A stretch of 64,000 bases of DNA from Hyaloraphidium curvatum SAG 235-1 (Eukaryota; Fungi; Monoblepharomycota), in NCBI GenBank assembly GCA_025558095.1, contig JAIVFI010000006.1:558001-622000 (forward strand), written 5' to 3'. Every line of letters begins with the position of its first letter. Within the stretch, counting starts at the first letter, position 1. Below are positions 13,010 through 57,353 of this stretch, in pieces. A model generated the notes under the pieces. That model did not search any database and had not been told where the DNA came from. It saw only the letters and a program-made list of their open reading frames with translations. A program made the translations under genes and the position numbers.

Positions 13010-13018
13010 ATATTATAT

Positions 13019-16427: not shown

Positions 16428-16598
16428 TGTCAGGACGGGCCTTGGGAGATGGCCTAGTCATGGGTTGGTTAGGGAGAGCATATGGGGGCGGCCCAAACAC
16501 CATGTACCCCACTGCTTCTCACTGTGTACATAGACATCCCGCCGCCTCAATGCTATGCAGTCCCCACTAGGGCCCAGCTGGCCCCTGGGTTCCTGACA
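16428..16598 (+). repeat. LTR-B (171 bp; TGTCAGGA...TCCTGACA) preceded by a PPT; also at ~19101-19271 and 24144-24314
   Basis: Perfect 8-bp terminal inverted repeats, TG...CA ends, and a GAGAAAGGGGAGGG purine tract immediately upstream. Confidence 0.88.
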
Positions 16599-21681: not shown

Positions 21682-22377
21682 TCCACCACTTCCCAAGGCC
21701 ACGATCACGCCTTCTGGAGACCTGCTGCGCCCCATCACCCTCAAGGAGCTGGAGAGGGTCTTGAAGAAGGCCCCCAACGGCAAGGCAAAGGACGAGGATG
21801 GGATCCGGCTCGAGTTCGTCAAGTACGGGACTGCAGTACTGAAGCAAGGTTGTCAACCTCCTCAACGACGTGCTCAATGGCGTCAAGATGGATGACTGGG
21901 GCCAGACACTGCTGGTGATGCTGCACAAGAAGGGGCCCAAAACGTGGCTGGCAACTACCGAGGCATCATGATCAGCATAGAGAGGACGCTGGGGAAGCTT
22001 AACAAGAAGGTCTTCTCCCTGGTCTGGAACGCTCGGCTAGCTCCCTGGGCTGAATGCAACAAGCTGCTGGAAGGCTCGCAGTTTGGATTCCGTGCACGGA
22101 GATCGACCCTTCGTTCATGCAGTGTTCCTTGCCGAGGCACTCTTCTCCTTGGCCAAGGCACGCAAGGAGAAGCTGATCATGGTGTTTGTAGATTTCACAA
22201 AGGCTTTTGACACGGTGGAGCGCCCCAGGTTATGGCAGAAGCTGGAGGAGATGGGAGTACCCAAACTGGTTGTTGACATGTTCGAGATGGCGTTCGGGCG
22301 CGTGTGGGGACAGCTCTGGGATGAAGACGGGACCAAGTCAGACTTCATCAAGTTCCTGACCGGAGTGAAGCAGGGGG
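21682..22377 (+). mobile_element. LINE internal fragment (copy of ~10837-11533)
   Basis: Same sequence and same frameshifts as the first copy. Confidence 0.9.
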
Positions 22378-22613
22378 TGTTGGAATGGATCGTTGCTACG
22401 ATTCTGTATCAATAGGGAGTCTATTGGCGTGTGGGGATACTTGGGTACGATCGGAGGGGTCATCTAGGGACTTGTCATCACAAGGGAATGGACAATGGGT
22501 CAACGTGAAACTGTCCCTCTCCCCATCCCGTCCATCTGAGTTCTGACCCGGTTCAGACCACTGGGGCTACGTCTTCCCCACGCCCCATAGCCACTCCAAC
22601 AGGTTATGAGCCC
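22378..22613 (+). mobile_element. Ty1/Copia-type 5' LTR (22378-22601) plus PBS
   Basis: TGTTGGA...TCCAACA termini immediately followed by GGTTATGAGCCC, the half-tRNAiMet PBS typical of copia/Ty5-like elements. Confidence 0.8.
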
Positions 22614-22673
22614 AAAGGGTGTCCAGAACACTTTTGCGCCCATGAGTTTGCTGCTAATTGCAAAGTTCATCGT

Positions 22674-23731
22674 AACCTCACCGTGTAAAGGTCATGTACA
22701 GGGACCAGGAGCTGAAGAGGGTTGACAGCTTCAAGCTTCTGGGGTATCAGCTGACCTCAACCGGCCGGAGCAAGGACCATGTGCATGGCAGAGAGGCCAA
22801 GATGAACGCTGCTTAGCGCTGCTTATGGGCTCTTCAGGCTCCGTGACATCAGGGAGCAGCCTGGGATGAGTCCTGAGCTCCAGCTCAAGCTCTACAACAC
22901 AAAGGTCAAGGCAGTGGGCCAATATGGGAACCCGTTCATTGTTGAGATGCCAAAGGAGGAGTACCTTGCCGGGGAAAGCACCAGGGACAAAGTGACATGC
23001 ATGGCTCTTCGTGCCGTCACTCATCTGCCCAAGTCTACCTCCCTGGCCTGTCTGTATGCGATCACTGGCCAGTACCCCCTTGCAGTTCATGACCACAAGT
23101 CGGCACTCAAGTTCCTCATGCGCATCAAAACAGCGGATCCTGCACTGTACCTACTTTACAAAGAGCTCAAGATCGAGGCACTGAAGGGGTCCTGGAACTG
23201 GGCTCTTCCTGAGGGAACTACTTGTATACTATGGCGGCGAAGATGGGAGGGAGATGTGGGAGAAGGACACTGTCTCATGGCCCAAGGAGACTGTGGAGAA
23301 TCTTGTGAAGGGCAAGTTCAGGGAGATCAATGCCCAGAGGCTCAAGGACAACGACAAACTGCACTTTTGGAGGATGTGTGACATGACCTTTGGCCACATC
23401 GGACCATCCCTGATCCGGGTGGAGAAGCACCGGAGGGATGTCCAAAAGTTGCTGTGCTCTACCCACGACCTGGAGGTGGAGACAGGCAGGCACCAAGGAC
23501 TTGAGGTGCAGCAGAGAACGTGCAAGCATGACCCTGAGCACATTGGAGACGAACAACACTTTCTGTTTCACTGTTCAGCAAATGCGGAGCGGCGCCAGAA
23601 GCTGCAGACTAGATTGGAAGCACTAGGCCGCGAGTGGAACATGGAGACCTGGCTCTGGGCTCTTAGCATCAAGGAGTTCGAGCCCACAATCAAAGCGAGG
23701 CGGCAGAAGGAGAAGGCCCTCAACTCCATTG
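22674..23731 (+). mobile_element. LINE fragment (copy of ~11813-12860)
   Basis: Direct sequence similarity, with small indels near 22810-22840. Confidence 0.9.
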
Positions 23732-24314
23732 CCCCTGGGTTCCTGACATAGTGAGAAGCACGTGCGAAAAGCTTGAGAAGCGCGCACAATTCAGCACCAG
23801 AAGGACCGTTCAGCAAATGGATTTGCACCCTGAGGGAGTGAGTTAGCCAACAGACAAAAGCAAAGAGGGACCGAGAAGGTCACCTGTGGACGACTGTGAA
23901 GGCACAATCGGAGCAGAAGGAGCTCGAATGATTGGCAGTCGAGGCTTGAGAGCCTAGAGAGTGTGAATAGCCACTGGATCGAGGCAAAGGCCCAGCAGAT
24001 GCCAGCTGAGCTTGACGCAGCTTTGACGCAGAAGATCAAAGCACGCTACAGTCTGGAAGTAAGCAAAGCAAACATCAGAAGCAAATTCAGCTGATGAGGG
24101 TCACTCTTGAAATTGAGGCAAGTCCTGGTGAGAAAGGGGAGGGTGTCAGGACGGGCCTTGGGAGATGGCCTAGTCATGGGTTGGTTAGGGAGAGCATATG
24201 GGGGCGGCCCAAACACCATGTACCCCACTGCTTCTCACTGTGTACATAGACATCCCGCCGCCTCAATGCTATGCAGTCCCCACTAGGGCCCAGCTGGCCC
24301 CTGGGTTCCTGACA
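23731..24314 (+). mobile_element. TRIM-like miniature LTR element: truncated 5' LTR-B, PBS, ~395 bp non-coding internal region, PPT, 3' LTR-B
   Basis: LTR-B end GCCCCTGGGTTCCTGACA at 23731-23748 and a full LTR-B at 24144-24314. The internal region is shared with the tandem unit. Confidence 0.75.
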
Positions 24315-24317
24315 CAT

Positions 24318-24503
24318 AATCGACTTATTGTGATGCCCAACGATCGTTGCTCTGTTGGTGGCATTTGTGACGCGCCTTTGACTTTTCGCTGCGTGCCTAG
24401 TGAGTCTTTCAGCCAAGCACATAAATAAAGTGGTCGAAGAACTCCTTGAGTTCGGCATCTCCTCCGTCCTTTGATTCGGCATCTACGTCGTCCTTGCCTT
24501 GCA
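24318..24503 (-). pseudogene. Inverted, decayed duplicate of host ORF segment ~8886-9080
   Basis: Translates as LQGKDDVDAESKDGGDAELKEFFDHF versus LQGEDDGDAESKDGGAAELKEFFDHF in ORF 8408-9685. Confidence 0.85.
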
Positions 24504-24829
24504 AAACAGCGATGCATTCGGACGCGGATGCGAGGGAGGTGGATCCTTCATCGGGCAGGGCGCTGCTGCGGTTGGCGCAGGGGACGCTGCGCCGGAGGCG
24601 GAAGGAGCCACAGGGGGATCTGCTGGCAACCGTCATGGCGAACCGTCAGGAGCTGGCTGCATGAGATCCCGTTGCTCTTCGTGTGGTATAGCCAGATACA
24701 TCAGGCTGCATTATACCATATTGATGCCATTTCCGTTCATTGGTGCGCAGAGCAAGCCAGCTGCTTTCTCAAGGACTAGGAGTTGTGAGACAATGCGACT
24801 TGCGGTCATCGATTCAAAAGCAAGTGTTG

Positions 24830-24999
24830 TGTCAGGAACCCAGGGGCCAGCTGGGCCCTAGTGGGGACTGCATAGCATCGAGGCGGCAGGATGTCTATGT
24901 ACACAGTGAGAAGCAGTGGGGTACATGGTGTTTGGGCCGCCCCCATATGCCCTAACCAACCCATGACTAGGCCATCTCCCAAGGCCCGTCCTGATGACA
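24830..24999 (-). repeat. Solo LTR-B in reverse orientation with 5-bp TSD TGTTG
   Basis: Slightly diverged reverse complement of LTR-B. TGTTG at 24825-24829 and 25000-25004. Confidence 0.88.
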
Positions 25000-25048
25000 T
25001 GTTGTTGCACAAGTACTGCTCTGAAAGTGTCATTTATTCTCATCATCA

Positions 25049-32072: not shown

Positions 32073-34938
32073 TAGGGTGCCTGGCAAGCTCAAAAAATAC
32101 CGTGCCCACGGGCATGCCCATCACCTGATCCGGTGCCCATGGGCACCATATGGGCATGCCCATCATGTACTTGTAGAAGAGAGTCTATTAGGAACGTGCA
32201 CGATGCTGCGCTAAGAGTGCTTCCAAGCTTATCTGTGCCTCCCCCTCCTCAACAAAAGCCCGCAGCGGTTGAGCAGCAGCCAATTGGGCTTCCTCAGCAG
32301 TGCGCAGTTGATTAATGTCGAGGAAACTCTCCAAGACATAGGGCCCTGTCGCGGCGCGGAAGACGGAAGTTGTCCCAAATCCCACCTCGAACTCCTCCTC
32401 CTCCGCATCAATGCGAGGCCAAAGTGCGTGGAAAACATCTCGGTGCTGCTCGTTTTCCGGGTCCAGGGCCCGGATAGGAGCTCCCGAGCCCAAGGTCAAG
32501 GAATCCAGGACGTCGGCAAGGTTGTCATCGGTTCCGTGGGTTCTCCAGGGCTTTTCCTCCGCAGATTGCACCCTTGGCTTTAAGGTCTTCATCTCCTGCT
32601 TCAATGCGCTCTTGACCAGCCCTATTTCCTTCAACGTTGCGGAATTCATTCGATTCCGCGAGTCTGTCTTTGCAAGGCCCAAACTGGAAAACACGCGCTC
32701 GGTCGCGGCACTGTGCGGCGCAATGCTAAGCACCATGAGCGCAAACTCGCGCACAAAGACGAGTTCCGTAGTGCCCAAGCCCCAGGTCTCCCAGAACTCC
32801 CTTGCCGTCCGAACCTGGCCGTCGATCCCGCTGAACATGTTGCGCCCGAAGAAATAGTCATCCAGCTGGGCAAGGACCGACAAGCTGGCCTCCTGTCGGA
32901 ACTTCCAAGCAAGCAGCAGCTTGCCAATCTCCCATTCGAGCCACCGCTTCTTGTCCCTGCCGTCGACCTGGCACCCAGTCACAGAAAACTTCCGGTGAAC
33001 AGGGGAAAGGTGGAGAGCAACAAGGTAGATCGCATGATCAAACTCCTTGACTCTGGCATTTAACGACAACTTAGCCAGAGCGAATGTTTCCCTGGCACCC
33101 TCCACAACGGGACTAACACCACGCCAGGTCCGAGCAACCATCGAATACTCGATCAGTACGTCTGCCAGGGTCGCGTCCGAATGCTCAAGGCGGCCTAGGG
33201 CATCCACAATCGGCCTCACGATCTGGATCAGCTCCGCATTGTGGGCAAAGTGATACGGGTCCTTCACCACATCCAGCACCCGATCTGGAACGTCTGTCGG
33301 CCGTACACCGGGTTCCAGGCCATCGTGCGCGTGTTGCGGGCTGAGGAGAAGACGGAACCACGGCTGATGTGCGTCAATGCCCAAGCAGACCGTAATGAGA
33401 GAGTACCAGCACGAGTCGGTATGCGTCGCGAGGGAGTGTGCAACATCGTGCTTGCCGGCCCAAATCTGGGCCAAGCGGCGCCACATAGGCGCCTTGTGAA
33501 TCCAATTGACGAGAGTGAGGTTCTTTTTGATCACGGAGGTGGCCCAGTCGTGCTTCACAATGTCCTTGACGAGCAGGTTGAGGTTGTGGAGAACACACCG
33601 AATGCCGATGATGTGGGGGTGCTCCGTGCTCACCAGCCGACGAAGCTTCTTCATGACGGAAGGACTGTCCGTGCAGAACGCGTTCACGGGGCCCGGGGCC
33701 GCGAGATTGAGGCCAATTGAGCGGCACGACATGTTCACCTTCTCGTGCAAAAGCTCCGCGTTGTGGCGATCCTGAGTGACATCCCAGAGGTCCAACAAAC
33801 GCTCCATGCCCGGTGTAACGGCTACCATCGCGTAGATTGAGGCCCCAGACGAATCTTCCCATCCGTCAAGCTGCAGAGTCCACGACTTTGCGGTCCCACA
33901 AAGCACGACCAACTTCTGGGCTTCGTCCCTAGTGATCTGGGTCAGGATACCACCAATAGAGTGGCGTGTCAGGGGCCGGTACGCCGGGCTCAGGATCCCC
34001 AGAGCTTGCAGCAAATATGGATTCGACGCGAATCGAAACGGGACGTTGCCGGTCACAAAAGCTTTGGTGATCGCGAAATCCACCGCACTTGCAGTGGCAG
34101 CAGACAGAGGGGGATGGAAATGAGCCAGGAGAGTTCCAGCGCCAGATGCGGAGCCCGCCGCAGAACACGCCGAGGGCGGCGTCGACGACGCGTCAGAAAA
34201 CGCGTTCCTCTTCCTGCGTTTGCTCTGCGGCGCTGCAGCAGACTTTTTCTTCTGCTCCTCGTCGTACTGATTGAGGCGCCGAAGGTACGCGACGCGTTCT
34301 TCCCCCACGGACTTGCACTTGGAAACGATGTGCTGCTCCAACCGTTCTGGCCGGCCATCCATTTCCTCCGAGCAGAAAGTGCACTTGGCCGTGACGCGTT
34401 TGCCCCTGTTCACCCCGTCCTTCCTTTTGACGAGGAAGCCCGCCCATCGCGGGTCGAGATCCGGTGCCGGGCGCACCCAATCGCCCCGCTCCACGGAAGG
34501 TCGCAAGGAGGCAGAGCCGCGCTCGGATCCGCTCTCCTCCTCGTCGCTGCGTCCTTCATTGACTGCGCTGATGCTGTCATTGGGCGCGAGTTCGTCCTCC
34601 ATGTTCAGGACTTCGCAAAGCCGGTGAACTCGCGACGAACCCCCCACCCGCCGACCGCGACACCCTCGCAGAAAAGGAACGGAGACCGCTCTACGGATGA
34701 ATGATTTCATTGAATCACTATATCAATTCATCCACGTTTGCTTGGCGTGAGCGATAGATTCCGCGTCCTGGCCCTGGCTCCTGACCCCTTAGGCCGGCTC
34801 CCCTGCCCGCTCGACGGGCTCGCTGTTGGGCACCCGGTGGGCAGCGCATCCGCAATTGGTGCCCATGGGCATGCCATGGGCATGCCCATGGGCATGCCCA
34901 CTTTGGGCATGCCCAACTTTTTGGTGCCAGGCACCCTA
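32073..34938 (-). mobile_element. hAT DNA transposon, 2866 bp, TIR TAGGGTGCCTGGCA, 8-bp TSD AGGACGGG
   Basis: 14-bp perfect TIRs. TSD at 32065-32072 and 34939-34946. GGGCATGCCC palindromic subterminal arrays. Confidence 0.97.
32188..34710 (-). CDS. hAT transposase (BED zinc finger, DDE, C-terminal dimerisation domain)
   Basis: AKCTFC..LEQHIVSKC, LQLDGW, FCTDSP, RCVLHNLNL, SAATERVFS. Confidence 0.95.
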   Translation of the reverse strand: MKSFIRRAVSVPFLRGCRGRRVGGSSRVHRLCEVLNMEDELAPNDSISAVNEGRSDEEESGSERGSASLRPSVERGDWVRPAPDLDPRWAGFLVKRKDGVNRGKRVTAKCTFCSEEMDGRPERLEQHIVSKCKSVGEERVAYLRRLNQYDEEQKKKSAAAPQSKRRKRNAFSDASSTPPSACSAAGSASGAGTLLAHFHPPLSAATASAVDFAITKAFVTGNVPFRFASNPYLLQALGILSPAYRPLTRHSIGGILTQITRDEAQKLVVLCGTAKSWTLQLDGWEDSSGASIYAMVAVTPGMERLLDLWDVTQDRHNAELLHEKVNMSCRSIGLNLAAPGPVNAFCTDSPSVMKKLRRLVSTEHPHIIGIRCVLHNLNLLVKDIVKHDWATSVIKKNLTLVNWIHKAPMWRRLAQIWAGKHDVAHSLATHTDSCWYSLITVCLGIDAHQPWFRLLLSPQHAHDGLEPGVRPTDVPDRVLDVVKDPYHFAHNAELIQIVRPIVDALGRLEHSDATLADVLIEYSMVARTWRGVSPVVEGARETFALAKLSLNARVKEFDHAIYLVALHLSPVHRKFSVTGCQVDGRDKKRWLEWEIGKLLLAWKFRQEASLSVLAQLDDYFFGRNMFSGIDGQVRTAREFWETWGLGTTELVFVREFALMVLSIAPHSAATERVFSSLGLAKTDSRNRMNSATLKEIGLVKSALKQEMKTLKPRVQSAEEKPWRTHGTDDNLADVLDSLTLGSGAPIRALDPENEQHRDVFHALWPRIDAEEEEFEVGFGTTSVFRAATGPYVLESFLDINQLRTAEEAQLAAAQPLRAFVEEGEAQISLEALLAQHRARS

Positions 34939-42282: not shown

Positions 42283-44317
42283 ATGCAGTTCGTTCCCCTC
42301 CGGGAGCTTCAGCCGTGCCCCAGCGCCACCTTCTATGCCGTCGTCGCGGCCGCCAAAGAGCCGACAAAGTCGAAAGGAACCGGTTGGAACGGGCCTGTGC
42401 GACGAGCGCTCCGGCTGACCCTGCTTCCAAGACTACGTACTTTCGTTCCAACTGACGGATCCGACTGTGGAAAACACTTTCGTCTCGGTGCAAATATTCC
42501 GGCGGACCCTAGCGGAGCTGCCGTCGGTGCAGGTCGGCGACGTTGTGAAGCTCTCAAACGTCAAGGTGGAGACACCGGGAGGCCGGGGGCGCCGCCAAAT
42601 GGCCAACATCGTCTGCATCGCAGGTCCAACGATTCAATGGGAAGGCCCAGTGCCTGTCGACCCGGCAGACGGCGTGCCTGGCCTTCCCCTCCGATCGCAA
42701 GGACCTCGTCGCCAGGCCTCCGCCCGACAACAGCCCCGAGGGAGCCGCGGAAGTGGACCAGGAGCAGGATGAGCGTCCGATAGCTGCGTTGCGGCGCTGG
42801 TGGAGGAAAAGCAGAGAACGTGTGGAGCCCGCGGCCATGATCCTGCCTTCGGCCCGCCGGCCAACGCTCCGACAGAGCGAGCTGGAAGCCAACAGGTTCT
42901 TCGACTACTACGGCGAGGTTTGTGAGGGTCTCGACTTTTCTCGGCCACCTCAAGACGTGTCCTTCAGGTCCTCGCAACGCGCTCCATCACGGACACCCAG
43001 TGTCTTGTGTGGCTCACGGACTTTACCGCGTCGCCCCTCCTGCGGTGAGGCTCGGCGCACTCGTAAAGGTCTGGACGGCATCTGGAACCACTGCACTTCA
43101 GGCCATATGAGCCGGAAGGCCTCATCCCCGAATACGAGCCCGTATGCCAGGGTTCCGTCTTGCCGTGCATAGCATGGTGGGTGTTTGCGCAATCCGTGGT
43201 GAGGGCGAGAGTGAACGGGAACGCTGCAGGGACGCCAACGCCGTGCGTGCTGCCGGGCTGGTCGCCGGCCAGATCGCCCTGTTCAGGAACATGCTTGCCC
43301 GGGATCGTGATGGGTTCCTGGAAGCGCATCTTCACGGAGACAGGGAAGGGACGGCAACGGAGAACAGGATCAGGGTCATTGATATCGAAGACTCGAGTCT
43401 GCTAGAGTTTCTTGAGTACGCACGCTCCGGACGACGGTGAAGTTCACTTCACTTGACTTACCCACACGCCGTGCAGGCAACGGGCTTCCGTCGTCTCCGT
43501 TCCGCCGCGTCGGATATCCATGTGCCAGCCGTCGCAAAAGCGCCGCATCTCGGAAGCGTTTGACACTGAGGGGGAGGGATCGGAGGCTTCTCCGTCAGCA
43601 AGGAGATCCAAAGCCCTCTCCGCCCGGACGTCGCTAGCCTCTGCACAATCGGCCACGCCGCGGACAAACCGGTCGCGGAGCATTGCGGAGATATTGATGG
43701 ACAACCAGGTGCTGCAGGCGGGCTGCAAGCTAGCGTCGCCCTGATTCCTGCCGCCCCCAGGTCCCAAATCGGTACTTTTGCGACGCCAAAGTTCTGGACT
43801 ACTTGCCGCGGAGGACCAAGGACTTTGCCGTGCCGATCTGCGACCGCTGTCATGCGAGGCAGGATCGCCGATGTTGCTGGCAAGCGTGGGAGCTGACGCG
43901 CTGGAACCCGCTGCAGCTGCCGTCCTTCGGACTCTCCCGAATGCCGCTCCTGCCCCGGCAACACTCGTTTCAGCTTCGAGTTCCGTTTCTCGCTGCTTCT
44001 GGGTGACGGCAAGGACCATTTACCGGTCCATGTTTCGGGGGAAGAGGCGGTGAGCTGGTCGAAACCCCGCTCCCGCTTTCCGTAACCCCGCACTGCCATC
44101 CGCGCAGCGACACTTTTTCGGCCGCCGGCAGGCCGAGAACCTACACAAGTGCGAGCAGGCGGCGCGGGAGATCCACAGCGCCATGATCCGCTCGGCCACG
44201 GTATCGCGAGAGGGGTCCTTCTGCGTGGAATCTTTCTGCCCGGAAAACGCGGCGAAGACGAGCACGGATAGGAGTTATCGGCTTGTATTCACCGCCGGCG
44301 ACAGACCCTTCCTCTAG
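42283..44317 (+). CDS. POT1: Telomeric ssDNA-binding protein Pot1 (OB folds)
   Basis: [61 protein letters not shown]-terminal [13 protein letters not shown]. Confidence 0.82.
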
Positions 44318-45204
44318 ATCGCTTCGCTGAGTAGCCGGTTCAGCTTGCTGATTTTCGACGATACCGAGAGGTCGATCGTCTTGTCGCCGACCTCGACGAT
44401 GAGACCGCCCAGGATGGCGGGGTTCACCTGCGCAGGAAGGTGAGGAACTACACCGCGGCGATGAGTGTCCGGAAAGAGCCCACCTTGCTCGTGACGGAAG
44501 CCTTCTGGTTGGCCTGCAGCAGGTTGCTCTTCTGCAGAAGGTCGCGGATCCTCCCCAAGGTCTTGCTGTCCAGCTCCTGCAAGCCCGCGATTGCCACGGT
44601 CACCACGGTTCGGCAAAGCGCCGCGGTCCGCGGGCGCCCACCTTGGCGGACGTCACCGTCACCTGCACCTGCCCCCGCGACGCCAGCAGCAGCTGCGAGA
44701 AAGCCGTGACGATCTTGGGCGTCTGGTCCAGGCGCCCGTTGTCCGCCAGCGTCTCGAAGAAGTTTGCGGTAATCTTCGAGTACGAGCCCTTCCCCAGCGC
44801 GGCCTTGACGCCGGCCTTCTTCGCCTCACGCGAGATGATGGGCGTCTCCATGAAGAAGCGGAACTTTGCGTCCTTGTCCATCAGGTCCTTGATGGCGGCC
44901 AGGTCGGCCTCGACCTTGTCGACCACGTCCTGCTTCTGCGCGGCGGTGAACAGCGCCGTTGCGTAGCGGCCGTCGATCCCGTGCAGCACGAGCGGCGGCT
45001 GGGGGCGGGTGAGCGGGGGGCGCGGCGGCGGCGGCGCGGGCGGCGCACCTGGCCGGATGCGGCGGTCACGTAGGAGCGGGCGGCGCGCGGGGCCTGCGGG
45101 CGCATCGCGGCGGGCGGCGTCAGCGACGGGGACGGGGCGGCCGGGCCGGCACGACCCACGGCTCCCGCCCGGAACAGTTCCCTCAGCGCCATTCGGGAGG
45201 CCAT
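44314..45204 (-). CDS. ATP5: ATP synthase OSCP subunit
   Basis: [52 protein letters not shown]. Confidence 0.95.
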
Positions 45205-45237: not shown

Positions 45238-45330
45238 CGACAGCGAAAGCACTAGCTACACTCTCAGAAACTGCTACTGTTCCCCCTGTGCCGCAATCCT
45301 TTGCGGCCTAGCAGCAATGTTCATCATCGA
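45238..45330 (-). ncRNA. Candidate Fanzor omegaRNA (right-end scaffold plus flank-derived guide)
   Basis: Downstream of the Fanzor stop and overlapping the TIR. Nested stems CTGCTA/TAGCAG (45271-76/45309-14) and GCCGCAA/TTGCGGC (45290-45307). Boundaries are estimates. Confidence 0.5.
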
Positions 45331-48300
45331 GCCTGCGAATAAAAGGCGGTCCCTGACGGACTCCACCTCGATCAAGCAAATGCAATGGCGCCCACGCGGT
45401 GCATGGCACGCCAACTTGTAACTGTTTCCGCGGCCAGGTCAGCTTGCCGGCTTGAGCTTCTTGACCGACCCATTCGCGGCGCTTGCGGCCGTACGCTTGC
45501 GGCCTGTGGCGGCACCTGGAGCTCCCGGATCAGCTCGGGATGACGCTCGGGATGACCGTCGCGAATGCGAGCGCGCTCACCCGCGGACTTGCGCGGCGCT
45601 GCACCAGTCCCAGCTCGGAGCTTGGGCTGCGGCTTCGGCTTCCTGGTGTCCGGCCTGAACGGCCAGGGGCGCTCCCCTCCGGTGATGAGGCCGAACCAGA
45701 AGAGGTGCTCCATGGAGTGCACACTGTTCACGTCGCGCATCCAGAAGCGGCGGCAGAGGGGACAGTATTTCACCCCGCGCACCTCGCCCTTGGAGCCGGG
45801 GTTCCGGATTCCGACGACATAGGTGGTCTTGCAGCTGGAAAGGACGTCAGGCGAGTCGGATGATCACGGCGGCTGCCGCACCAGCTGCACATCTGGGACG
45901 TGAGGTACTCGTTGACCAAGACCATGATCCCGGCCTTGGCCAGCTCCGCCCTGAAGCGAACGATCCGGGAGGCCGGGCCGCCCTTGCTCGCATGGCCGAA
46001 TCGCGCGGCGCCGTATGCGATGGTCGTCTGTGGATCGTACTTGCCCGAATACGGGTTGCGACACATGTCGCGACAGATCCAGCTGAGGACCTCGCGGCGC
46101 CGGCGAATCGTGCGCACACGATCCAGGCTGCAGGATGCGTGAGCGAAGTCGTTGCCACAGGGATTGGCTTGCCCACCTCCGTTCTCCGGAACAGTAGACG
46201 TCCAGGATGCGGTCGAGTTGTGGCAGCAGCGCCCTCGTGTAGTCCGAGAAGGCTGCACTGTTTGTCGTGCGTTGAGAGGGCAGGTCGCGCTCGAAATCGT
46301 GGAGAGACTTCTGCACAGGGTTGCCCTCGCAATCGTTGACGTCCAGCATGGTGGTCCGCTTGGTGGCATTCAGACGCGCGGCCGCCTTGTCGTAGCCGCA
46401 CAGGCGGCGGTCGAGCTTGGCCGGAACACCGAGGATGAGCTCCGGCAGCGCCGGGGTCCCCGCACGGCCGGCACCAGCGACCTCGCCCCACAGCTTGGCA
46501 CCAAACTCGTCCGTGCAGCCGCCAGGGGTCGGGAACAGTTCGACGTTGCGCCGAGCGTGCTTCTCCGCCTTTGCAGCGTCGTTGGGGCGCGAATCGGGCG
46601 CCGGCGGCTTGAACTCCGAGATCTTGGGCTCCCAGAGCGGGTGGTGTCTGCACGCTCCAGCGGCAGGCGGCGACGGACCGAAAGACCTTGCGATCCGCTT
46701 AGTATCGGAGCAGGAGTGCTCTAGGTGGAAGCCGACGATCCTCCCGAAGCTGACGGAACCGTCGGCCTTGGACGGGTTCGCCCGCTTCGGCACGTAGTGC
46801 GACTTGGTGCCGTCGGCATTGGTCACGGTGATGCGCTCCGTTGTCCCCGGCAGATGACTGTTGGCGAAGTCGTAGCGTCCGTTCGGCCCGGGATTCAGGC
46901 TCTTGGCAACGAGCCGCACGTCGACGCGGCGGTTGGCAACAGCCAGAAACCAGCGATTCGGATCCACGTCGACGACCCCGCCCTCCACTGGCTCGCCGCG
47001 CTCGGCCCGCTCGAACATTTCCGCCTGCGTCGGCATGTGCAGGAGATTGGGTGCCAGCACGGACACATGGTCAGGGCGGCTGAGGTAGTAGACGGGAATG
47101 CCAGTCTTGAAGTCGACCGGGGGCCGCGGCAACGGCTCGGCAGAACGCGGCGGGAGCGGAACCGGGGTCGGGGCCAGCTGAGGAGGTACGGGGGCAGCGA
47201 ACTTGCCCTCGACCGTTACCGTCGGCGGCGACGGTTCGACCGCGCAAACGACGACTTCGGGAGGGAAGCAAGAAAGGAAGGGGGAAGGAAGTGGCGGCGA
47301 GAAGTCGGGGAAAGGAAGGGCCGCGCATGGATGCACAGAAGTCTCGGGCACCGAGTCACCGGGCGAGACAGTCGCGCAGGGAGGGTCGTTGTGCCCCGAG
47401 CTCAGGGGCGCGAACACGTTGGGCGCACAGTCCACGGCCTTGCAGGCGGCATCTTGACAGCACGAGCACGGGTCGTGCACCCAATGCGGGGGCGGTTCCG
47501 GGGGAATGGAGGCAGGGAGAGAAGTCGAGGCTGGTGGTTCGACGAAGGAGAAAAAGGGCGGGGGTTCCGGCGGGACCGCGGCGGGGATGCCGCAGTCCGC
47601 CGGAGGCTCGGAAGGCATGGTGGTGAAGTTAAGGTTGCTGCTGGCACAATAAGAGGGCTCCCAATCCATCGGGACCGATTCGTCCCCTTGGGCCGTCGCC
47701 TGCAGGTAGTAGACCATGCCCCCATGCCAAATCCGATTCTGGCCTGGAAAAGTGAGGATCCGATCAGCCTCCGAACCCGTGCGTCACTGAGCAAAATGCC
47801 CACCATCGAAGACAGCCATGTCGCACGGCGGGTCCGGATCGCCGTTTGGCAGCCATGGACCGGTGTAGAGCGGCGGGTATGGATCCATCGGAACATCGCG
47901 AGGGAACGAAACATCCACTTCGAAAGCAGCAAGACCGGCGGGCACATGAGCTGCGGCGGGAACGGAGACGGTGGGCCGAGTTTGAACAGGAGGAGCCGGC
48001 GCGGCTGCTGGCGAATGCGCTGCGCGCTTTGGCGGCTCGACGTCCTGTGTCGTGTTTTGCCGCTCCTGCTGCTGCGACTGCTGGAACGAGACCTTTTCCA
48101 CGAAGGAGACTTCTTCGTTAAGAATGCCCAGGGTGCTGCCGCAATGATAGATGCCCCGGACGCCGGAGTACCTCAGAACGTCCGCGGTGCGACGATAGAT
48201 GGGCTGCGTGGCGGCGGCATGGCCCCTTGCCGAGACTTTGCCCTGCTGACGGAGGCGGAAGAGCCGGTCCTCGTTGACGAGTTGGTTGCCGCCGTTGAGC

Positions 48301-51300
48301 AGGTGGCCGAATAGGTAGTCCGAGTCAACGCGCGAGGTGTCGATGCCAGGCGCGACCTCCACGCCCAGCTTGGACAAAAACTCGGGCAGATCCGAGGCCG
48401 AGATGTAGACGGTCACGGGGGACAAGCTGATTTCGGCGACCGCAGCCCGAAGCTTCCGCCGCGCCCACGAGGCTGCCTTTTCCTTGCCGGTCTGGGCGGC
48501 GCCAAGCCCCGCCATCGCGGCGGCGGCGGCCGCCTTGCGCTCCCGCCGCTTCGTCTCCATGGTCTCCTTCTTGGCGAGTCCCTCGGGCCCCGGCTGCGGT
48601 CGGCGCTTACGGAAGCTCACGACGAACCCGTGCCATCGCTTCGGGGAGCCATTCTTGCTGTAATGCCGCTTCTCGACGCGGTGCGGCCGCCACGTGTTGC
48701 GGGCCCTCCTGGTCTTGTTCGAAGCCTCCCTGTCCTTGACCGGAGCAGTTGAAATGGTTGGGAAAGTTGGGGTTGAATCGGGGTCCCTGGCGGTGCTCGT
48801 CCTCCGCGCCGTTCCAGGTTCCGGCAGTGCAGCAGCCGCGGACGCGGCCCTCTTCTTCAGCGCCTCGTCCTGCTTTTCGAGCTCGTGCAGGGCGATGAAG
48901 CACATCTGGAAGCCGAAGGCTTCGTCCGCGGGGTTCGTGGATGAACGACACTTGTCGAGGTCATACTCGCTCATCCGCGCCACCAGAAGCTTCTCGCTTT
49001 CCCAGTGGGGCCGGTTCTGCCCCACCAATGCCGCCGCCGCCGCCTCGTTCATGTCCTCGGCGTGCTCGGGGACCCAGAACTTGGGTTTCTGCTCTGTCGA
49101 CCGAATCGTTGCCGTGGTCACGGCCGGGTAGCGGAAGGGGATGCTCCGAAGCTGTAGACGGTTTGCAACCACCCAGTCCCTCAGCTCCTGCAGCTCCACC
49201 TTTCGCAAGTCAGCCTTCTCCGCAGGTGAGGCCCGCGGCAGCGTCTCCCAAATGTTCTGGAGGTAGCTGCGCACCGCCTCCGTTTCCGCGTCGACCTTTC
49301 CGCGCGGCTTGCCCTTCGGCAGGTTCACGGTTCGCACCGCGGCCGCCACGGGGTTGCCCGCCTGCTTGTCCTGCAGGACCCGAGCGATAACCCTCCGCTG
49401 CGAAACGGTTGCCGGCACCGGCGGCTTCTGTTTTGAATCCCGGAGGTCAACGATCCGGTTCAGCTGCAAGCCTCTGAACGGCCGGAAAAGCCTCCCCAGC
49501 CCGACCCTGAGCTCCGTGGCCTCGGCAAGACCACAGCCAAATGCGCTTTCGAACGGGAAATTGGAGAAGTCGTCGTCCCCATATCCGAGCTTTGCCAGAG
49601 CGTAGCTGAGGATTGGGCCAATCCGCCTCCGGCCGACGCCCGCGTTCACCTCCCCGCGTAGGAAGCGACGGATGAGAACCTTGAGCGCAGTCAGCAGCCG
49701 CTGCGGCACGCTTCGAGCTCGGTTGAAAGCGACCTGCTCGGCATAGCGGAGCAAAGGTCCCTGCACGAAAAGCGGCCTGAGCTTTTCGTACGTCTCGCCC
49801 ACAAGTTCCCGCGCCTCTGCAAACGCAGCAACGGCCGCCTTGCGGACAAGCTTTGCCGCTGCGTTGTGCTCCGCGACGGTGAGAACGGACGGTGCGCCCT
49901 GATCAGCAACCTGCGAGAGATCGGGGGTGTCCTCAGCCGTAACCAAGTCCTCGTCCTCAATCTGATCCAGCTCGCCGTGCAAGAAGTCGGCCAAGATCTT
50001 GGCGCCGGCCTGGTCCTCGTCCATCGCGTCGTCATCGTCCTCGAAGTCAACGTCCTCGAGCACCTCGTCTCGATCGTCGTCGTTGGCTCCGAGGTCCGGA
50101 CCGCCGTCCACAAGCTGCTCCACTCCTGGCGCACCCGAATGGCCCGAGTATCTCGCCCCAGCACCGAGCCCGGCCGACTTCTGCTTTCCCGCGCGGCGGG
50201 TTCCAACAGCGGCGGACATCTGGCCGGCACCAAGCACGGCGTGGATGGCAATCTTTGCGACGTAAGACGGGGGAAAGCTGGCGAGCATGTCCTGCGTGAC
50301 GGATCCGTCTTGGTCCGGGAGCTCTTTGTTGTGGATCTGCAACAAGATCTTGGTCCAGATGATCTTGAACAAGATGGCGGCGAGGGTGCAGGCCTTGGTG
50401 ATGAGGGGCCCGACTTGCTCGTACGGGCCCCGCGCCCATGGGTGGCACACCTCGGCCGCCGGGAACCACTCGACGGCCAGCTCCGTCATCGTCTTGTATC
50501 GCTCGTGCTGGGGGTCGCCAAGTGCGAGGAAGCCGTTGAGCGCGACCCACCGCCGCTTCGGAGAGCACTCCTGCCGGTGCCTCCCGCCACCGGCGAAACA
50601 GAAAGGGCAGGACGAGCCGCCGAGGCCCGTAGGAATGTTGGCTTTGAGGTTTGTCGACGCGAACGGGACAATGTAGTGTGCGTTGGCAATGAACTGGCCG
50701 AACGACGTGGTGAGATTCCTTGGGGCGACCAAACTGTCCGCGGCGGCGGTCAGCTTCGCATCGGTCCCAGGCATGCATGGAAAGCGCGGTGCAACTCACG
50801 CCCCACGGTGGTTCTCCTCGACATGCTGCCGGAACTCACTCTCGAGGTCGAACTGATGTCCCTTCCCCGGGCACGCTCTGCAGGTGAGGTGCGCACCCTT
50901 GACGTGGTGGAGGAGCCGAAGCTCGGCGTCATAGACACGCTCCCGCGCAGCTCCGTCAGCCACCATCCCCGACGCCGCGACCTTGCGCCGCCGCCCAGCC
51001 TTCGCCGGGACTTCGCCTTCCACCTGCACACTGAAGGAACAGAGCGGACAATCCCGCTTCTGGATACGGCCGAAGTCCAGCAGTCCAACGGATTCCGCGA
51101 GGAAGTGGAGCTTGGCGTCGAGCGCGGTGCGCGCGGCCTCCTGCCGTGCTTCGGGGTTGCTACCGCGCACCAGCGCGGGCATACCGCACAAGTCCAGGGT
51201 AAAATCGCGCATCTTGGGCCCCGACTCCAGCAGCCGCAGCGTCACCATGGAAGAGTGTTCCCACCCGAGCTGCTCCGCCTTCAGGAACAGGGTTGCCAGC

Positions 51301-53879
51301 AGCTTATCGCCCTCTGCATCCAGTCCAGGTACGCCCGGGCTCATCTGGAAAAGGCCCGGGAACGAAAGCAGCTGCCGGGGCAAAAATCAGTTTGGGATTG
51401 CGGGGCTGCTCGACAGGAGATTGCACACCAGCACGGGAACGGAACCCGGATTCTCGATGGCGAGGGCCTCCTCGTTGGCCGCCATCGGGTTCCACACCGC
51501 CCAATCGAAGAATCTCTTGCGCCCTTCCGCATTGCGACTCGCCACACTATCCGGCAAACGCGCCGCCATGACTATCTTGCATCGCTGCGGGAGGGAGAGC
51601 GAAGCAAGGAAGTACTCCAGGCCGGGCGACGCATCAAAAAGCGAGCGGCCCTGCTGGTCCTTCAGCGTGCGGCACGCTTCCTCCAGTATCTGCCTAAGGT
51701 TCCTTGGCAAAGACTCGGTCGAAGCCGCGCGTTCGAGGTACTCCAACCGACAGACCTTCGAAATGGGCTGGTGAACATAATGCAGAGCACGACGTGCTGT
51801 CTCGGATGTTTCGAAGCTGTCCATGCGTGCCCTCCCGGCCGGGCCGAGCTGTCCCCAGAGAGAAACAGCGAGCGCACGTAGCCATTCTGGTCCACGACCG
51901 TTTCGTACAAGGCCCGATAGGAGGATGGCGAACCTCTCGTCCAGCACGGTGTCGTTTGCAAGGGCTGAGAGCGGAAACAGCTGTTTCAACGCGGCGCGGC
52001 TGGCTTTCTTGAACGAGACGTTAAGTTCCGGTGGGACGTCGGCATAGCGGGCGAGGTTATCCAGCTGGGAGATGGAGACGTCGGGGGCTGACGGCGGTCC
52101 CAGATCCGCGCCATCGTCCGCGGGGCGGAAAAAGGGAGGTGCCGGTGCGTCTGGTCCGATCAGACTGGGGGCGACCCGGCGCCGCCGGGCGACGATGTTC
52201 CGGAGGCGCGCGACGAAAAGCTCGCGCTCCAGCTTGTACCCCCGACCCGATGCCACCCGCTGACAGATGAACTCAAAAGGAGCTTCACCGAGGTTGGAGA
52301 GGCCCCCGAGGACGTCCGCAGCGTCGAAGCCCGCGGTCCTTTGAGCGGAGTCCGTGAAGTCGTTCCACGGCCCAAAGAATTCCCTCGCCGAACCATCGAC
52401 GTGGAGAACTTCCCTCAGGGTCAGCAAAGTGTGCTTTTGGTGCGGGTTGATGTGGGCGACGCCGAGGTTGCGAGCCTGCTCGGAGTGGGCGTTGTCGTGA
52501 GTCAGCGCGGTCTGCATGCCCGATGCGCAACCGTCATGGCAGTCCACCTCTTCAGCGAGCCGCTCGGCCGCGTTTGCTTCGGTCTGGGTCGCTGCTGCGC
52601 CCTCCATCGCGGAAGGGCACGTCTGAGGAGCCGGAGAAGCAAAGGCAGAGATCTGACCTTGTAGTGTGACCTTCCGCGCCACACATTTGCCGGCGGACGC
52701 GGATTCCGCGATGCGCACAAACTCAGCCTCGCTTAGCTTCAAGCAGTGCCGGAACGTCGCCATCAGATCGCCGTGGCCGACGATTTGAATGGCCCTCTCG
52801 ATGGACCGGACGAGATCCGGCACTGTCCTGGGGCAGTCCCGCCTCACGAGGTTCTTGATCGTGGCAAACACGTACTCGGTCGGGTTAAATTCCGGCGATC
52901 TCGGTCGCAGGTAGATGAGGCTCAGATTGTTGGCCTTTGCTACGGCCTGGACCGCAAGGAACGACTTGCCCGAGAGGTTCTTTATTATTGCCGTGCCGTC
53001 CGTGGTCTTCCTTGCCCGCAGAGGAGAGCCGTGGAAACCCGCATTGTCCAGGATAACGCCCAGGGACTCGGACCCACAAGCCCCGGCGCGAATAGTCTTG
53101 AGAAAAGCACAGAACCTCTCGGTGTTCATGTTGCCGCTGTAGATCTGGTACGAGATCACGTTTCCAGTGTGATTACCGGGTCGCGAAGTGGGTGAGATGG
53201 CGAGGCAAAGGGTCACCTTGGGGCCCCGGTTCCCTGGCAGGTATACGACGGCGGGAGTCCCCTTCTCCGAGTAGCCGAAGCGCCCCGGATCGTTGAGTTG
53301 GAATGAGGACTCGTCCAAGGCACCTAGGCGCCCCAAATCAAAGGAAGTGACCCTCTCGTGGAACATGCGGTGCCGCTCGGGTTGTTTCAGGGCTTCGGCG
53401 CTCTTAATGGTGAGCTTCTTCCTCGTGACCCTGTTGGCCTTCAGCAGCCGCGAGATATGCTGCTGCGACACCAAAACGCCAAACTTTTCCGCCAGGTCAG
53501 CAGCGAGCTCCCTTTGCGTCACGCGGACGCGAGCTTTGGCCTCGTCAACTACGTGCCGGACCATTTCCTCGGACACCTTGCGGAAGGCCTTGCGGGGATG
53601 GTCCGGAACGGTCTGAGCCCCACATCGGCGGATCCAACGGAAATACGTCGTTCGGTGAATTGCGAGTACAGCAGCAATCTCGTCCGGGCCAAGCTTGCCG
53701 GTCTGCTTGAGCCGAACCGCGGTTTCTGGCCCGCTCAGAAGCATGTTTTGGCCGTGCCGTTCCCCGATGCGACGCAGGAGGCACCACGCGCCTTTTGCGA
53801 TGGAGACTGTGCTCTAGCGGTTGCAAATTCGCACGCGGCGACTCCGGCAAGCTCGAGTAGCGGGACCTGTGTGTGAAAC
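45255..53879 (-). mobile_element. IS630/Tc1-mariner-type Fanzor transposon, 8625 bp, TA-flanked, imperfect 24-bp TIRs
   Basis: TA at 45253-54 and 53880-81. Ends GCTACACTCTCAGAAACTGCTACT and (reverse complement) GTTTCACACACAGGTCCCGCTACT match 16/24. The interval contains exactly the transposase-Fanzor gene. Confidence 0.7.
45372..53744 (-). CDS. Predicted ~2697-aa IS630/Tc1 transposase-Fanzor fusion. Exons 53744-51429, 51371-50800, 50733-47804, 47743-46177, 46127-45882, 45834-45372
   Basis: N-terminus: HTH (EIAAVLAIHRTTYFRWIRR), LDESSF, ILDNAGFH, SPEFNPTE. C-terminus: VVDVDPN, IAYGAARF..KG, VNEYLTSQMCSCC, CPLC..MRDVNS. Five GT-AG introns (57, 66, 60, 49, 47 nt) each restore frame; total 8094 nt. 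Confidence 0.82.
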
Positions 53880-53907
53880 TATGGCCGTTTGGGCAAAGCT
53901 TGCCCAC

Positions 53908-56773
53908 TAGGGTGCCTGGCACCAAAAAGTTGGGCATGCCCAAAGTGGGCATGCCCATGGGCATGCCCATGGCATGCCCATGGGCACCAATTGCGGATGC
54001 GCTGCCCACCGGGTGCCCAACAGCGAGCCCGTCGAGCGGGCAGGGGAGCCGGCCTAAGGGGTCAGGAGCCAGGGCCAGGACGCGGAATCTATCGCTCACG
54101 CCAAGCAAACGTGGATGAATTGATATAGTGATTCAATGAAATCATTCATCCGTAGAGCGGTCTCCGTTCCTTTTCTGCGAGGGTGTCGCGGTCGGCGGGT
54201 GGGGGGTTCGTCGCGAGTTCACCGGCTTTGCGAAGTCCTGAACATGGAGGACGAACTCGCGCCCAATGACAGCATCAGCGCAGTCAATGAAGGACGCAGC
54301 GACGAGGAGGAGAGCGGATCCGAGCGCGGCTCTGCCTCCTTGCGACCTTCCGTGGAGCGGGGCGATTGGGTGCGCCCGGCACCGGATCTCGACCCGCGAT
54401 GGGCGGGCTTCCTCGTCAAAAGGAAGGACGGGGTGAACAGGGGCAAACGCGTCACGGCCAAGTGCACTTTCTGCTCGGAGGAAATGGATGGCCGGCCAGA
54501 ACGGTTGGAGCAGCACATCGTTTCCAAGTGCAAGTCCGTGGGGGAAGAACGCGTCGCGTACCTTCGGCGCCTCAATCAGTACGACGAGGAGCAGAAGAAA
54601 AAGTCTGCTGCAGCGCCGCAGAGCAAACGCAGGAAGAGGAACGCGTTTTCTGACGCGTCGTCGACGCCGCCCTCGGCGTGTTCTGCGGCGGGCTCCGCAT
54701 CTGGCGCTGGAACTCTCCTGGCTCATTTCCATCCCCCTCTGTCTGCTGCCACTGCAAGTGCGGTGGATTTCGCGATCACCAAAGCTTTTGTGACCGGCAA
54801 CGTCCCGTTTCGATTCGCGTCGAATCCATATTTGCTGCAAGCTCTGGGGATCCTGAGCCCGGCGTACCGGCCCCTGACACGCCACTCTATTGGTGGTATC
54901 CTGACCCAGATCACTAGGGACGAAGCCCAGAAGTTGGTCGTGCTTTGTGGGACCGCAAAGTCGTGGACTCTGCAGCTTGACGGATGGGAAGATTCGTCTG
55001 GGGCCTCAATCTACGCGATGGTAGCCGTTACACCGGGCATGGAGCGTTTGTTGGACCTCTGGGATGTCACTCAGGATCGCCACAACGCGGAGCTTTTGCA
55101 CGAGAAGGTGAACATGTCGTGCCGCTCAATTGGCCTCAATCTCGCGGCCCCGGGCCCCGTGAACGCGTTCTGCACGGACAGTCCTTCCGTCATGAAGAAG
55201 CTTCGTCGGCTGGTGAGCACGGAGCACCCCCACATCATCGGCATTCGGTGTGTTCTCCACAACCTCAACCTGCTCGTCAAGGACATTGTGAAGCACGACT
55301 GGGCCACCTCCGTGATCAAAAAGAACCTCACTCTCGTCAATTGGATTCACAAGGCGCCTATGTGGCGCCGCTTGGCCCAGATTTGGGCCGGCAAGCACGA
55401 TGTTGCACACTCCCTCGCGACGCATACCGACTCGTGCTGGTACTCTCTCATTACGGTCTGCTTGGGCATTGACGCACATCAGCCGTGGTTCCGTCTTCTC
55501 CTCAGCCCGCAACACGCGCACGATGGCCTGGAACCCGGTGTACGGCCGACAGACGTTCCAGATCGGGTGCTGGATGTGGTGAAGGACCCGTATCACTTTG
55601 CCCACAATGCGGAGCTGATCCAGATCGTGAGGCCGATTGTGGATGCCCTAGGCCGCCTTGAGCATTCGGACGCGACCCTGGCAGACGTACTGATCGAGTA
55701 TTCGATGGTTGCTCGGACCTGGCGTGGTGTTAGTCCCGTTGTGGAGGGTGCCAGGGAAACATTCGCTCTGGCTAAGTTGTCGTTAAATGCCAGAGTCAAG
55801 GAGTTTGATCATGCGATCTACCTTGTTGCTCTCCACCTTTCCCCTGTTCACCGGAAGTTTTCTGTGACTGGGTGCCAGGTCGACGGCAGGGACAAGAAGC
55901 GGTGGCTCGAATGGGAGATTGGCAAGCTGCTGCTTGCTTGGAAGTTCCGACAGGAGGCCAGCTTGTCGGTCCTTGCCCAGCTGGATGACTATTTCTTCGG
56001 GCGCAACATGTTCAGCGGGATCGACGGCCAGGTTCGGACGGCAAGGGAGTTCTGGGAGACCTGGGGCTTGGGCACTACGGAACTCGTCTTTGTGCGCGAG
56101 TTTGCGCTCATGGTGCTTAGCATTGCGCCGCACAGTGCCGCGACCGAGCGCGTGTTTTCCAGTTTGGGCCTTGCAAAGACAGACTCGCGGAATCGAATGA
56201 ATTCCGCAACGTTGAAGGAAATAGGGCTGGTCAAGAGCGCATTGAAGCAGGAGATGAAGACCTTAAAGCCAAGGGTGCAATCTGCGGAGGAAAAGCCCTG
56301 GAGAACCCACGGAACCGATGACAACCTTGCCGACGTCCTGGATTCCTTGACCTTGGGCTCGGGAGCTCCTATCCGGGCCCTGGACCCGGAAAACGAGCAG
56401 CACCGAGATGTTTTCCACGCACTTTGGCCTCGCATTGATGCGGAGGAGGAGGAGTTCGAGGTGGGATTTGGGACAACTTCCGTCTTCCGCGCCGCGACAG
56501 GGCCCTATGTCTTGGAGAGTTTCCTCGACATTAATCAACTGCGCACTGCTGAGGAAGCCCAATTGGCTGCTGCTCAACCGCTGCGGGCTTTTGTTGAGGA
56601 GGGGGAGGCACAGATAAGCTTGGAAGCACTCTTAGCGCAGCATCGTGCACGTTCCTAATAGACTCTCTTCTACAAGTACATGATGGGCATGCCCATATGG
56701 TGCCCATGGGCACCGGATCAGGTGATGGGCATGCCCGTGGGCACGGTATTTTTTGAGCTTGCCAGGCACCCTA
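53908..56773 (+). mobile_element. Second copy of the hAT transposon, 2866 bp, 8-bp TSD TTGCCCAC
   Basis: Same TIRs. TSD at 53900-53907 and 56774-56781. Confidence 0.97.
54136..56658 (+). CDS. hAT transposase, identical translation to 32188-34710
   Basis: Identical 840-aa sequence in the ORF track. Confidence 0.95.
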   Translation: MKSFIRRAVSVPFLRGCRGRRVGGSSRVHRLCEVLNMEDELAPNDSISAVNEGRSDEEESGSERGSASLRPSVERGDWVRPAPDLDPRWAGFLVKRKDGVNRGKRVTAKCTFCSEEMDGRPERLEQHIVSKCKSVGEERVAYLRRLNQYDEEQKKKSAAAPQSKRRKRNAFSDASSTPPSACSAAGSASGAGTLLAHFHPPLSAATASAVDFAITKAFVTGNVPFRFASNPYLLQALGILSPAYRPLTRHSIGGILTQITRDEAQKLVVLCGTAKSWTLQLDGWEDSSGASIYAMVAVTPGMERLLDLWDVTQDRHNAELLHEKVNMSCRSIGLNLAAPGPVNAFCTDSPSVMKKLRRLVSTEHPHIIGIRCVLHNLNLLVKDIVKHDWATSVIKKNLTLVNWIHKAPMWRRLAQIWAGKHDVAHSLATHTDSCWYSLITVCLGIDAHQPWFRLLLSPQHAHDGLEPGVRPTDVPDRVLDVVKDPYHFAHNAELIQIVRPIVDALGRLEHSDATLADVLIEYSMVARTWRGVSPVVEGARETFALAKLSLNARVKEFDHAIYLVALHLSPVHRKFSVTGCQVDGRDKKRWLEWEIGKLLLAWKFRQEASLSVLAQLDDYFFGRNMFSGIDGQVRTAREFWETWGLGTTELVFVREFALMVLSIAPHSAATERVFSSLGLAKTDSRNRMNSATLKEIGLVKSALKQEMKTLKPRVQSAEEKPWRTHGTDDNLADVLDSLTLGSGAPIRALDPENEQHRDVFHALWPRIDAEEEEFEVGFGTTSVFRAATGPYVLESFLDINQLRTAEEAQLAAAQPLRAFVEEGEAQISLEALLAQHRARS

Positions 56774-57353
56774 TTGCCCACCCCAATTTCCGCGAACGAA
56801 ACGCTTGCCTAACTGCAACCGCACTCACCCCGTAACCGTTGGAGCGAGAACCAGCTAACCGGCGCGAAAGTTTCATATTTGCCGCTTTCTTTCTGCCGCC
56901 GTGGGGTGTGTGGGACGAAACACAGTGGTTTGCTGCTGGGTCTCGTTGACCGGGTGCCCCTCAGCGACGGCCAGGAAGACTGCTCAAGGCGCTGCTCAGC
57001 AGGCCTGGGTACGGCGAATGCAGTCTGCACATTGTTTTGGGATATGTACGCGGACCAGTGAGGCGCTGTAATCCGAGAACCGCGGGTTGAGCCCAGCACG
57101 GTGCTTTGGGCCTCCCGCCCTCGGCAGTTTTGCAAGCAGACAACGGAACAGATACATAGAGCGCATCAAATATGAAACATTTCCGGGTATTTCCTATTGG
57201 TTCCTGCTTTTGCCGTGGCCTGGGGGATGGGAGATTCGGCGCCCAGTTTTGTGTGCGGGGTGGGGCCGGGTGGGCAAGCTTTGGAGAAACGGCAATAACG
57301 CGCCGTGCGCAAGAGCTAGGAAACCCCTATCCGCTCCTGACCGGATCCCGGCA

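Follow-up and report, generated by a model that had tools for sequence, protein, structure and literature searches.

Why transposons keep a TnpB or Fanzor nuclease, and how the rule for cutting is matched to the rule for insertion, are open questions in eukaryotes (Saito 2023, PMC10432273). The locus described here lies in a 64,000-nt window (the whole stretch of DNA analysed) of a 31.9-Mb, 55-contig eukaryotic genome and raises the question of whether transposase and nuclease can be one protein, and how such a protein selects its sites. A first-pass annotation, made from the letters alone, had proposed that a series of open reading frames (ORFs) in this window encodes a covalent IS630-Fanzor single chain. 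The proposal is upheld by RNA splicing, by 10 + 5 genomic copies that agree in layout and by relatives in metagenomes, its activity side being predicted at the sequence level. We interpret the locus as a spliced IS630-Fanzor1-type fusion transposon which would read a target motif independently of a guide and use its nuclease for homing-type cutting of empty donor sites. To this interpretation as a whole, a probability of about one half is assigned.

A spliced gene for a single chain

To establish the structure of the gene, the six exons were checked one by one with phase arithmetic. Five GT-AG introns join them into a single frame of 2,697 amino acids (aa); the exons add up to 8,094 nt, i.e. 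2,698 codons with the stop, and contain no internal stop codon. All introns run from GT to CAG and harbor a branch motif resembling CTGAY or CTCAC. Five host-style introns restoring a frame of 2698 codons had been predicted by the first-pass annotation, and the predicted coordinates proved to be exact. Evidence for splicing comes from the public run X1, an RNA-derived data set, because its contigs show spliced joints. Within the region whose coverage was examined (45650-51600), these contigs skip exactly the five intron intervals at a depth of 3,200-4,650. Unspliced junctions, which the annotation had named as one case against the fusion, were thus not encountered, and the possibility of six unrelated ORFs or of a frameshifted pseudogene is ruled out by the splicing. 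The spliced single-frame gene is confirmed. At 47880 and 49487-49527, the X1 alleles are those of other copies, and the same holds for most alleles of the run; therefore, expression is demonstrated for the element family and not for the window copy.

It is conceivable that the cell makes little of the full-length protein or does not use it, and that a separate transposase and a separate giant Fanzor arise instead, be it through retention of introns, through an internal start within exon 1 or through proteolysis. The stop within intron 1 would yield a 785-aa product upon retention, and in the metagenome relative L031 an intron lying directly behind the DDE domain (1533-1609) would similarly release a transposase of 457 aa. 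Moreover, the X1 contigs cannot show transcript continuity. On the other hand, the depth is near-even over the examined region, the drop over intron 3 is as large as the skipped fraction, no retained form being among those listed, and in families A (that of the window element) and B (described below) neither a stop nor an intron separates the DDE domain from the spliced part. We regard split products as distinctly improbable.

The two enzyme domains

Residues ~9-340 were identified as an IS630 transposase (NF033545, 123 bits compared to a curated cut-off of 100; DDE_3, E 5e-15), in agreement with the earlier assignment of the N-terminal ~340 aa to an IS630/Tc1 helix-turn-helix (HTH) plus DDE protein. 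The triad D144, D233 and E290 is invariant in three relatives. Due to an insertion of ~22 aa between the second aspartate and the glutamate, the spacing is DD56E and lies outside the DD34-39E/D that is usual for IS630/Tc1/mariner transposases. In families A and B, the ~430 aa behind the DDE domain continue its frame without a stop or an intron in between, although identity in this part is only ~35%.

For the remainder of the chain, protein searches were made exon by exon. Exons 2-6 of the window did not show any direct match in Pfam, NCBIfam, PHROGs or PDB-sequence searches; a word search with exon 4 as well as viral and first metagenome scans were without matches, and exon 3 gave no informative match in libraries and a protein atlas. 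Among 1.84 billion proteins, 18 were recovered with a profile of exon 5, including standalone Fanzor-like proteins of 977 and 1,191 aa. Nine of the 18 were scanned, and eight contained PF07282 (TnpB/Fanzor) above the cut-off, the ninth weakly. When 33 natural Fanzor-like sequences were combined into a profile, it matched, in this order, the end of exon 4 (E 3e-4), exon 5 (E 3e-17) and exon 6 (E 1e-9). In a metagenome relative the last exon is uninterrupted and matches PF07282 directly (E 7e-10).

The motif E2535-YLTSQM-C places the RuvC-II glutamate six residues before the zinc finger, which is the arrangement of Fanzors (PMC13565253). RuvC-I was assigned to D2200 by motif only; its D-P-N is conserved in three families and resembles D383/N385 of SpuFz1. 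Compared to the published Fanzor1 motif, D-X(125-275)-[TS][TS]-XX-C4 finger-X(5-50)-RD (PMC3627910), the TS, the C4 finger and the RD are present and supported by profiles, and the candidate D2200 is situated 337 residues before the TS, beyond the range of 125-275. The residues that the first-pass annotation had picked for RuvC-I (46964), RuvC-II (45910), the C4 finger and RuvC-III (45734) are as it described them; profiles back E2535, the finger and D2578, and D2200 stands as a motif-based candidate. Hence, the assignment of the C-terminus to a predicted Fanzor/TnpB-type nuclease is supported, the putative catalytic triads of both enzymes being present. To the ~1,850 residues between the two enzyme domains no domain was assigned except a zinc-finger-like module in exon 2, which is conserved in family B and in the metagenome relatives.

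Besides these proteins, a clade of large standalone metagenome Fanzor-like proteins was observed whose zinc finger is interrupted by a long insertion (P0015, P0016, P0019 and P0038-P0045). Their sizes range from 626 to 1,191 aa, most of them having at least 945.

Copies, termini and relatives

The element is mobile and young. Its ends read T[A/C]GTTTCAC.. and ..GTAGCTA, six of the ten left ends starting with TC and not with TA. Between the termini, 10-11 of 15 terminal bases match in inverted orientation; a longer repeat was not found. Left and right ends each occur exactly ten times in the genome, and end searches of it revealed no short derivatives or ghost loci. Most copies have kept the reading frame, while C15 and C7b carry indels. 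Copy C35 (L009/L023) has a stop at codon 2265 and a 5′ deletion, yet an intact AG duplication, and is a mosaic of two subfamilies, a structure that gene conversion could have produced. Among variants present in more than one copy, synonymous changes tend to be more frequent than among private ones (synonymous to other 10:8 compared to 11:27; P 0.08). The only non-coding sequence common to families A and B is a hairpin just behind the stop codon, a candidate for an omegaRNA scaffold; the 3′ end gave no match in Rfam.

Family B comprises five copies and matches every exon in order. Identity to family A is 63% for the DDE domain, drops to 35-40% across the middle including exon 3 and reaches 84% for exon 5. 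As in family A, no stop interrupts the reading frame from the DDE domain through the next 400 aa, and the positions of introns 3-5 correspond in the two families. Two further loci on C2 have the same order and span. Outside this genome, lake-metagenome contigs (L031-L046) show the layout across ~10.3 kb with an IS630 domain that is 42% identical. For every gap of the L031 type, a GT-AG intron that keeps the frame is available; four of these introns were identified by script and the fifth (9179-9251) by reading. L031 and L032 agree with the element in gene order, zinc-finger exon and intron positions. The fusion is thus kept across families that are ~25-45% identical, and the search for the same architecture elsewhere, which had been suggested as a check, came out in favor of the single chain.

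Unfused elements with two ORFs, an IS630 transposase and a Fanzor, were retrieved as well (L094, L054). L094 has the right end GTAGCCA, as family B does, and within L094:745-3954 a single stop codon is all that separates the IS630 ORF from the in-frame Fanzor-like ORF downstream. As judged from this arrangement, L094 may possibly represent a precursor state of the fusion.

Some observations on these sequences stand apart. The exon following the first intron of L031 (1610-3676) holds an internal duplication of ~190 aa, and a carboxypeptidase match obtained with the L031 query was judged to be a chance local match. The right end of the C15 copy adjoins a broken, more distant IS630 transposase (C15:543630-545096), and several other IS630 relatives with 41-52% identity exist in the genome.

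Target site selection

IS630 and Mariner elements are described as strict for a TA target (PMC13565253). Target tests were based on the eight copies for which the sequence on either side is available; C5, C15, family B and the C2 loci did not contribute left flanks. Seven of the eight copies are bordered by a 2-bp duplication (P 5e-8) that varies from copy to copy (CC, CC, TG, AC, GC, CG, AG). Since these variable duplications lie outside the T..A termini carried by the element itself, TA as target duplication is ruled out. In seven aligned left flanks, a consensus block GGNYTNC with four invariant bases was detected at -32 to -23. The block contains 13.8 bits compared to a null maximum of 8.3, a value of this size being reached by none of 5,000 null draws, and upon leave-one-out scoring the true position ranked first of 289 in six of the seven copies. 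In seven of eight copies the element has the same orientation relative to the motif, the insertion point lies 20 nt beyond the motif's last fixed base and the duplication occupies 21-22. In the seven flanks, the positions -1 to -21 and the right side revealed background information only; there is no target-adjacent motif (TAM) directly at the left junction. GGNYTNC is found about six times per kb and is, therefore, TAM-like and not site-specific. Motif-based, oriented insertion replaces TA targeting in this element, a feature that the first-pass annotation had missed.

The guide-sized gap between motif and insertion point invites a reading in which integration is guided by RNA: GGNYTNC would be the Fanzor TAM, the next 20 nt would pair with the guide and the tethered DDE domain would insert at the far end of the R-loop. 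The fixed orientation and the covalent link between the two enzymes fit this picture, as does the position of the duplication at 21-22 after the motif, given that target-strand cleavage by SpuFz1 takes place after bases 20-21 (PMC10432273). However, guides derived from the right flanks of 15 copies did not match any of the seven target 20-mers beyond chance, neither in register nor nearby (0/15). Integration guided by donor right flanks is rejected on this result; to this extent, the direct RNA-guided integration raised in the first-pass annotation is not supported. There is also no fixed guide, because the target 20-mers are unrelated to one another. The guides would have to come from donors or RNA loci beyond the copies read. 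Furthermore, the RuvC triad is intact here, whereas the effectors of CRISPR-associated transposons (CAST) are nuclease-dead. RNA-guided integration appears improbable.

Proposed mechanism

From the site choice and the mobility seen in the copies, we infer a course of events that would combine both enzymes. The DDE domain may perform a strand transfer with a 2-nt stagger, having lost its TA specificity. A DNA-binding part of the same chain, either the TAM-reading lobe of the Fanzor or the zinc-finger/middle region, would read the motif without a guide match and hold the DDE site at a distance of about two helical turns, thereby setting both site and orientation. The RuvC part would carry an omegaRNA that derives from the 3′ end of the element and has the right flank as its guide. 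It would then cut empty donor alleles after their repair, and the element would be copied back (homing). For this nuclease the motif would serve as a remote TAM, adjoining the guide match only in the empty allele and lying 8.6 kb off in the occupied one. By means of the fusion, insertion-site choice and cutting rule could be tied to one recognition module, and action in cis would be favored. A homing model had already been put forward in the first-pass annotation; it is retained here in an amended form, since there is no conserved TAM at the insertion point and the conserved motif is found 23-32 nt upstream instead.

It may also be that the fusion is real and each half acts on its own. Reading of the motif would then fall solely to the transposase or to the zinc-finger region, the link would serve for co-delivery only, and the Fanzor half would cut empty donors using a relaxed TAM or one supplied by the footprint. 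The ~22-aa insertion of the DD56E domain could alter target reading, unfused IS630 plus Fanzor elements (L094, L054) are close in sequence space, and no evidence puts the motif reader in the Fanzor half. On the other hand, the spacing between motif and insertion equals the Fanzor footprint, and the persistence of the fusion among such divergent families suggests coupling. We consider independent halves unlikely, albeit an alternative to be reckoned with.

Several observations weigh against the guide-independent, homing fusion transposon. The stretch examined for RNA coverage stops short of the DDE part (51600-53881), and an internal promoter in exon 1 is possible. The window copy has neither a duplication (CA / GT) nor the motif, even after removal of the neighboring hAT transposon; a later rearrangement of the junction possibly explains this. 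Six metagenome left flanks do not show the motif. Those contigs are collapsed repeats with mixed flanks, which are uninformative, and the duplication and motif tests on them were set aside. A REC/WED lobe was not located by profile in exons 1-4. Regarding the structure and profile comparison recommended at the outset, hhalign gave 95% for exon 6 against the Fanzor profile, but both AlphaFold models were too poor for use, with a mean predicted local distance difference test (pLDDT) score of 46. The 3′ end of family A folds no better than shuffled sequences (z -0.4 to -0.9). Finally, no precedent was found for a TAM that is read 20 bp away from the guide match.

Features of the window

The coordinates of the element are compiled in Table 1. 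Its right end is located ~50 bp upstream of a gene (44300-45204, minus strand) that reads, by eye, like the oligomycin sensitivity-conferring protein (OSCP) of ATP synthase, and therefore lies within the promoter or 5′ untranslated region of that gene. The left flank of the window copy (53882-53907; right flank 45240-45252) has an inverted match of 86% at 57270-57297. At 26 bp from the left end lies a hAT transposon of 2,866 bp, of which the window contains two 100% identical copies, 53908-56773 (plus strand) and 32073-34938 (minus strand). It encodes an ORF of 840 aa with DUF659 and hAT dimerisation domains and has the ends TAGGGTGCCTGGCA; the copy at 53908-56773 is flanked by the 8-bp duplication TTGCCCAC. 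Its own ends, its own duplication and the separate identical copy rule out that it is part of the fusion element. A cluster of Ty3/gypsy-type long terminal repeat retrotransposon pieces (reverse transcriptase, integrase, SH3) spans ~9750-25000. It includes a 2.67-kb unit in tandem with 99.9% identity, possibly a product of assembly or recombination.

Table 1. Features of the fusion element and its gene (positions in the window)
Feature	Position	Strand	Remarks
Whole mobile element, 8,629 bp	45253..53881	-	10 genome copies, 99.7-99.9% identical
Left (5′) terminus T[A/C]GTTTCACACACAG	53867..53881	-	imperfect inverted repeat of right end
Exon 1, aa 1-772	51429..53744	-	HTH + IS630 DDE domain (aa ~9-340), then ~430 aa stop-free, no function assigned
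DDE triad D144 (53315), D233 (53048), E290 (52877)	52875..53315	-	spacing DD56E
Intron 1, 57 nt, phase 0	51372..51428	-	holds a stop; product of 785 aa if retained
Exon 2, aa 773-962	50800..51371	-	CxxC..HxxCxxC..HxxxxH zinc-finger-like module
Intron 2, 66 nt	50734..50799	-	spliced in RNA run
Exon 3, aa 963-1939	47804..50733	-	no library match; presumed REC/WED-like region (putative)
Intron 3, 60 nt	47744..47803	-	spliced in RNA run
Exon 4, aa 1940-2461	46177..47743	-	Pro-rich linker, RuvC-I candidate D2200-P-N (46964), ~190-aa insertion, helical region matching Fanzor profiles
Intron 4, 49 nt	46128..46176	-	position common to family B and L031
Exon 5, aa 2462-2543	45882..46127	-	RuvC-II E2535 (45910), six residues ahead of first zinc-finger Cys
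Intron 5, 47 nt	45835..45881	-	interrupts first CxxC
Exon 6, aa 2544-2697	45372..45834	-	remainder of C4 finger, RuvC-III D2578 (45734), RP motif, basic tail, stop
Hairpin just 3′ of stop	45343..45369	-	stem identical in families A and B, loop differs; candidate omegaRNA scaffold element
Right (3′) terminus CTGAGAGTGTAGCTA	45253..45267	-	related families end GTAGCCA/TAGCCA

Comparison with known systems

The element works like an IS630-Fanzor element, yet it has neither the TA target of IS630/Tc1 transposons nor the adjacent TAM of Fanzors. A text search of the literature, whose scope excludes most subscription papers and Repbase, revealed no natural transposase-Fanzor fusion. A close arrangement is offered by PGv-1 and PUl-1 (Mariner/Tc1 plus Fanzor1; Bao and Jurka 2013, PMC3627910), in which an IS630/Mariner-type transposase likewise lies 5′ of Fanzor1 in one element. 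Those elements possess separate ORFs, TA duplications and clear inverted repeats. The element described here encodes one chain of 2,697 aa, its inverted ends match weakly, and its insertions are marked by a 2-bp duplication of varying sequence and by a motif located 23-32 nt upstream. The IS630-linked TnpB branch DDE-6 (Altae-Tran 2023, PMC10691335) shares the IS630 DDE domain and a TnpB-family nuclease near the right end. Its genes are separate, its ends symmetric and its loci mostly those of giant viruses; in the searched part of that text, no fusion is mentioned.

With SpuFz1/Spu-1 (PMC10432273), the element has in common a candidate D-x-N, the glutamate six residues before the C4 finger and the RD; a putative RNA scaffold at the 3′ side, reaching as far as the end of the element, is a further parallel. 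By contrast, Spu-1 is compact, lacks a transposase, has the TAM CATA at its left junction and is accompanied by many ghost loci, while in the present element neither an adjacent TAM nor ghost loci were found. Even without guided integration, it is an IS630-type element in which TA targeting has been swapped for a motif two helical turns away. Its two enzymes form a single protein, and the element is young, expressed, present in several copies and marked by a clear and unusual target signature, so that mutants of individual domains can test the coupling directly.

Type V-K CAST and the engineered TniQ-TldR fusions (bioRxiv 2025.08.27.672191) share with the element a TnpB-family protein and oriented insertion at a fixed distance from a motif, which was seen here in seven of eight copies. 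These systems consist of several proteins with a nuclease-dead effector, use a spacing of ~60 bp and depend on a guide. The element, on the other hand, has one chain, intact RuvC residues and a spacing of ~21 bp, and the right-flank guides of 15 copies did not reveal a guide-matched protospacer. Should a guide nevertheless steer insertion, the protein would be a natural, programmable RNA-guided integrase of eukaryotic origin made of a single chain, which would be categorically new and is what engineers have tried to build from TnpB-family parts (bioRxiv 2025.08.27.672191).

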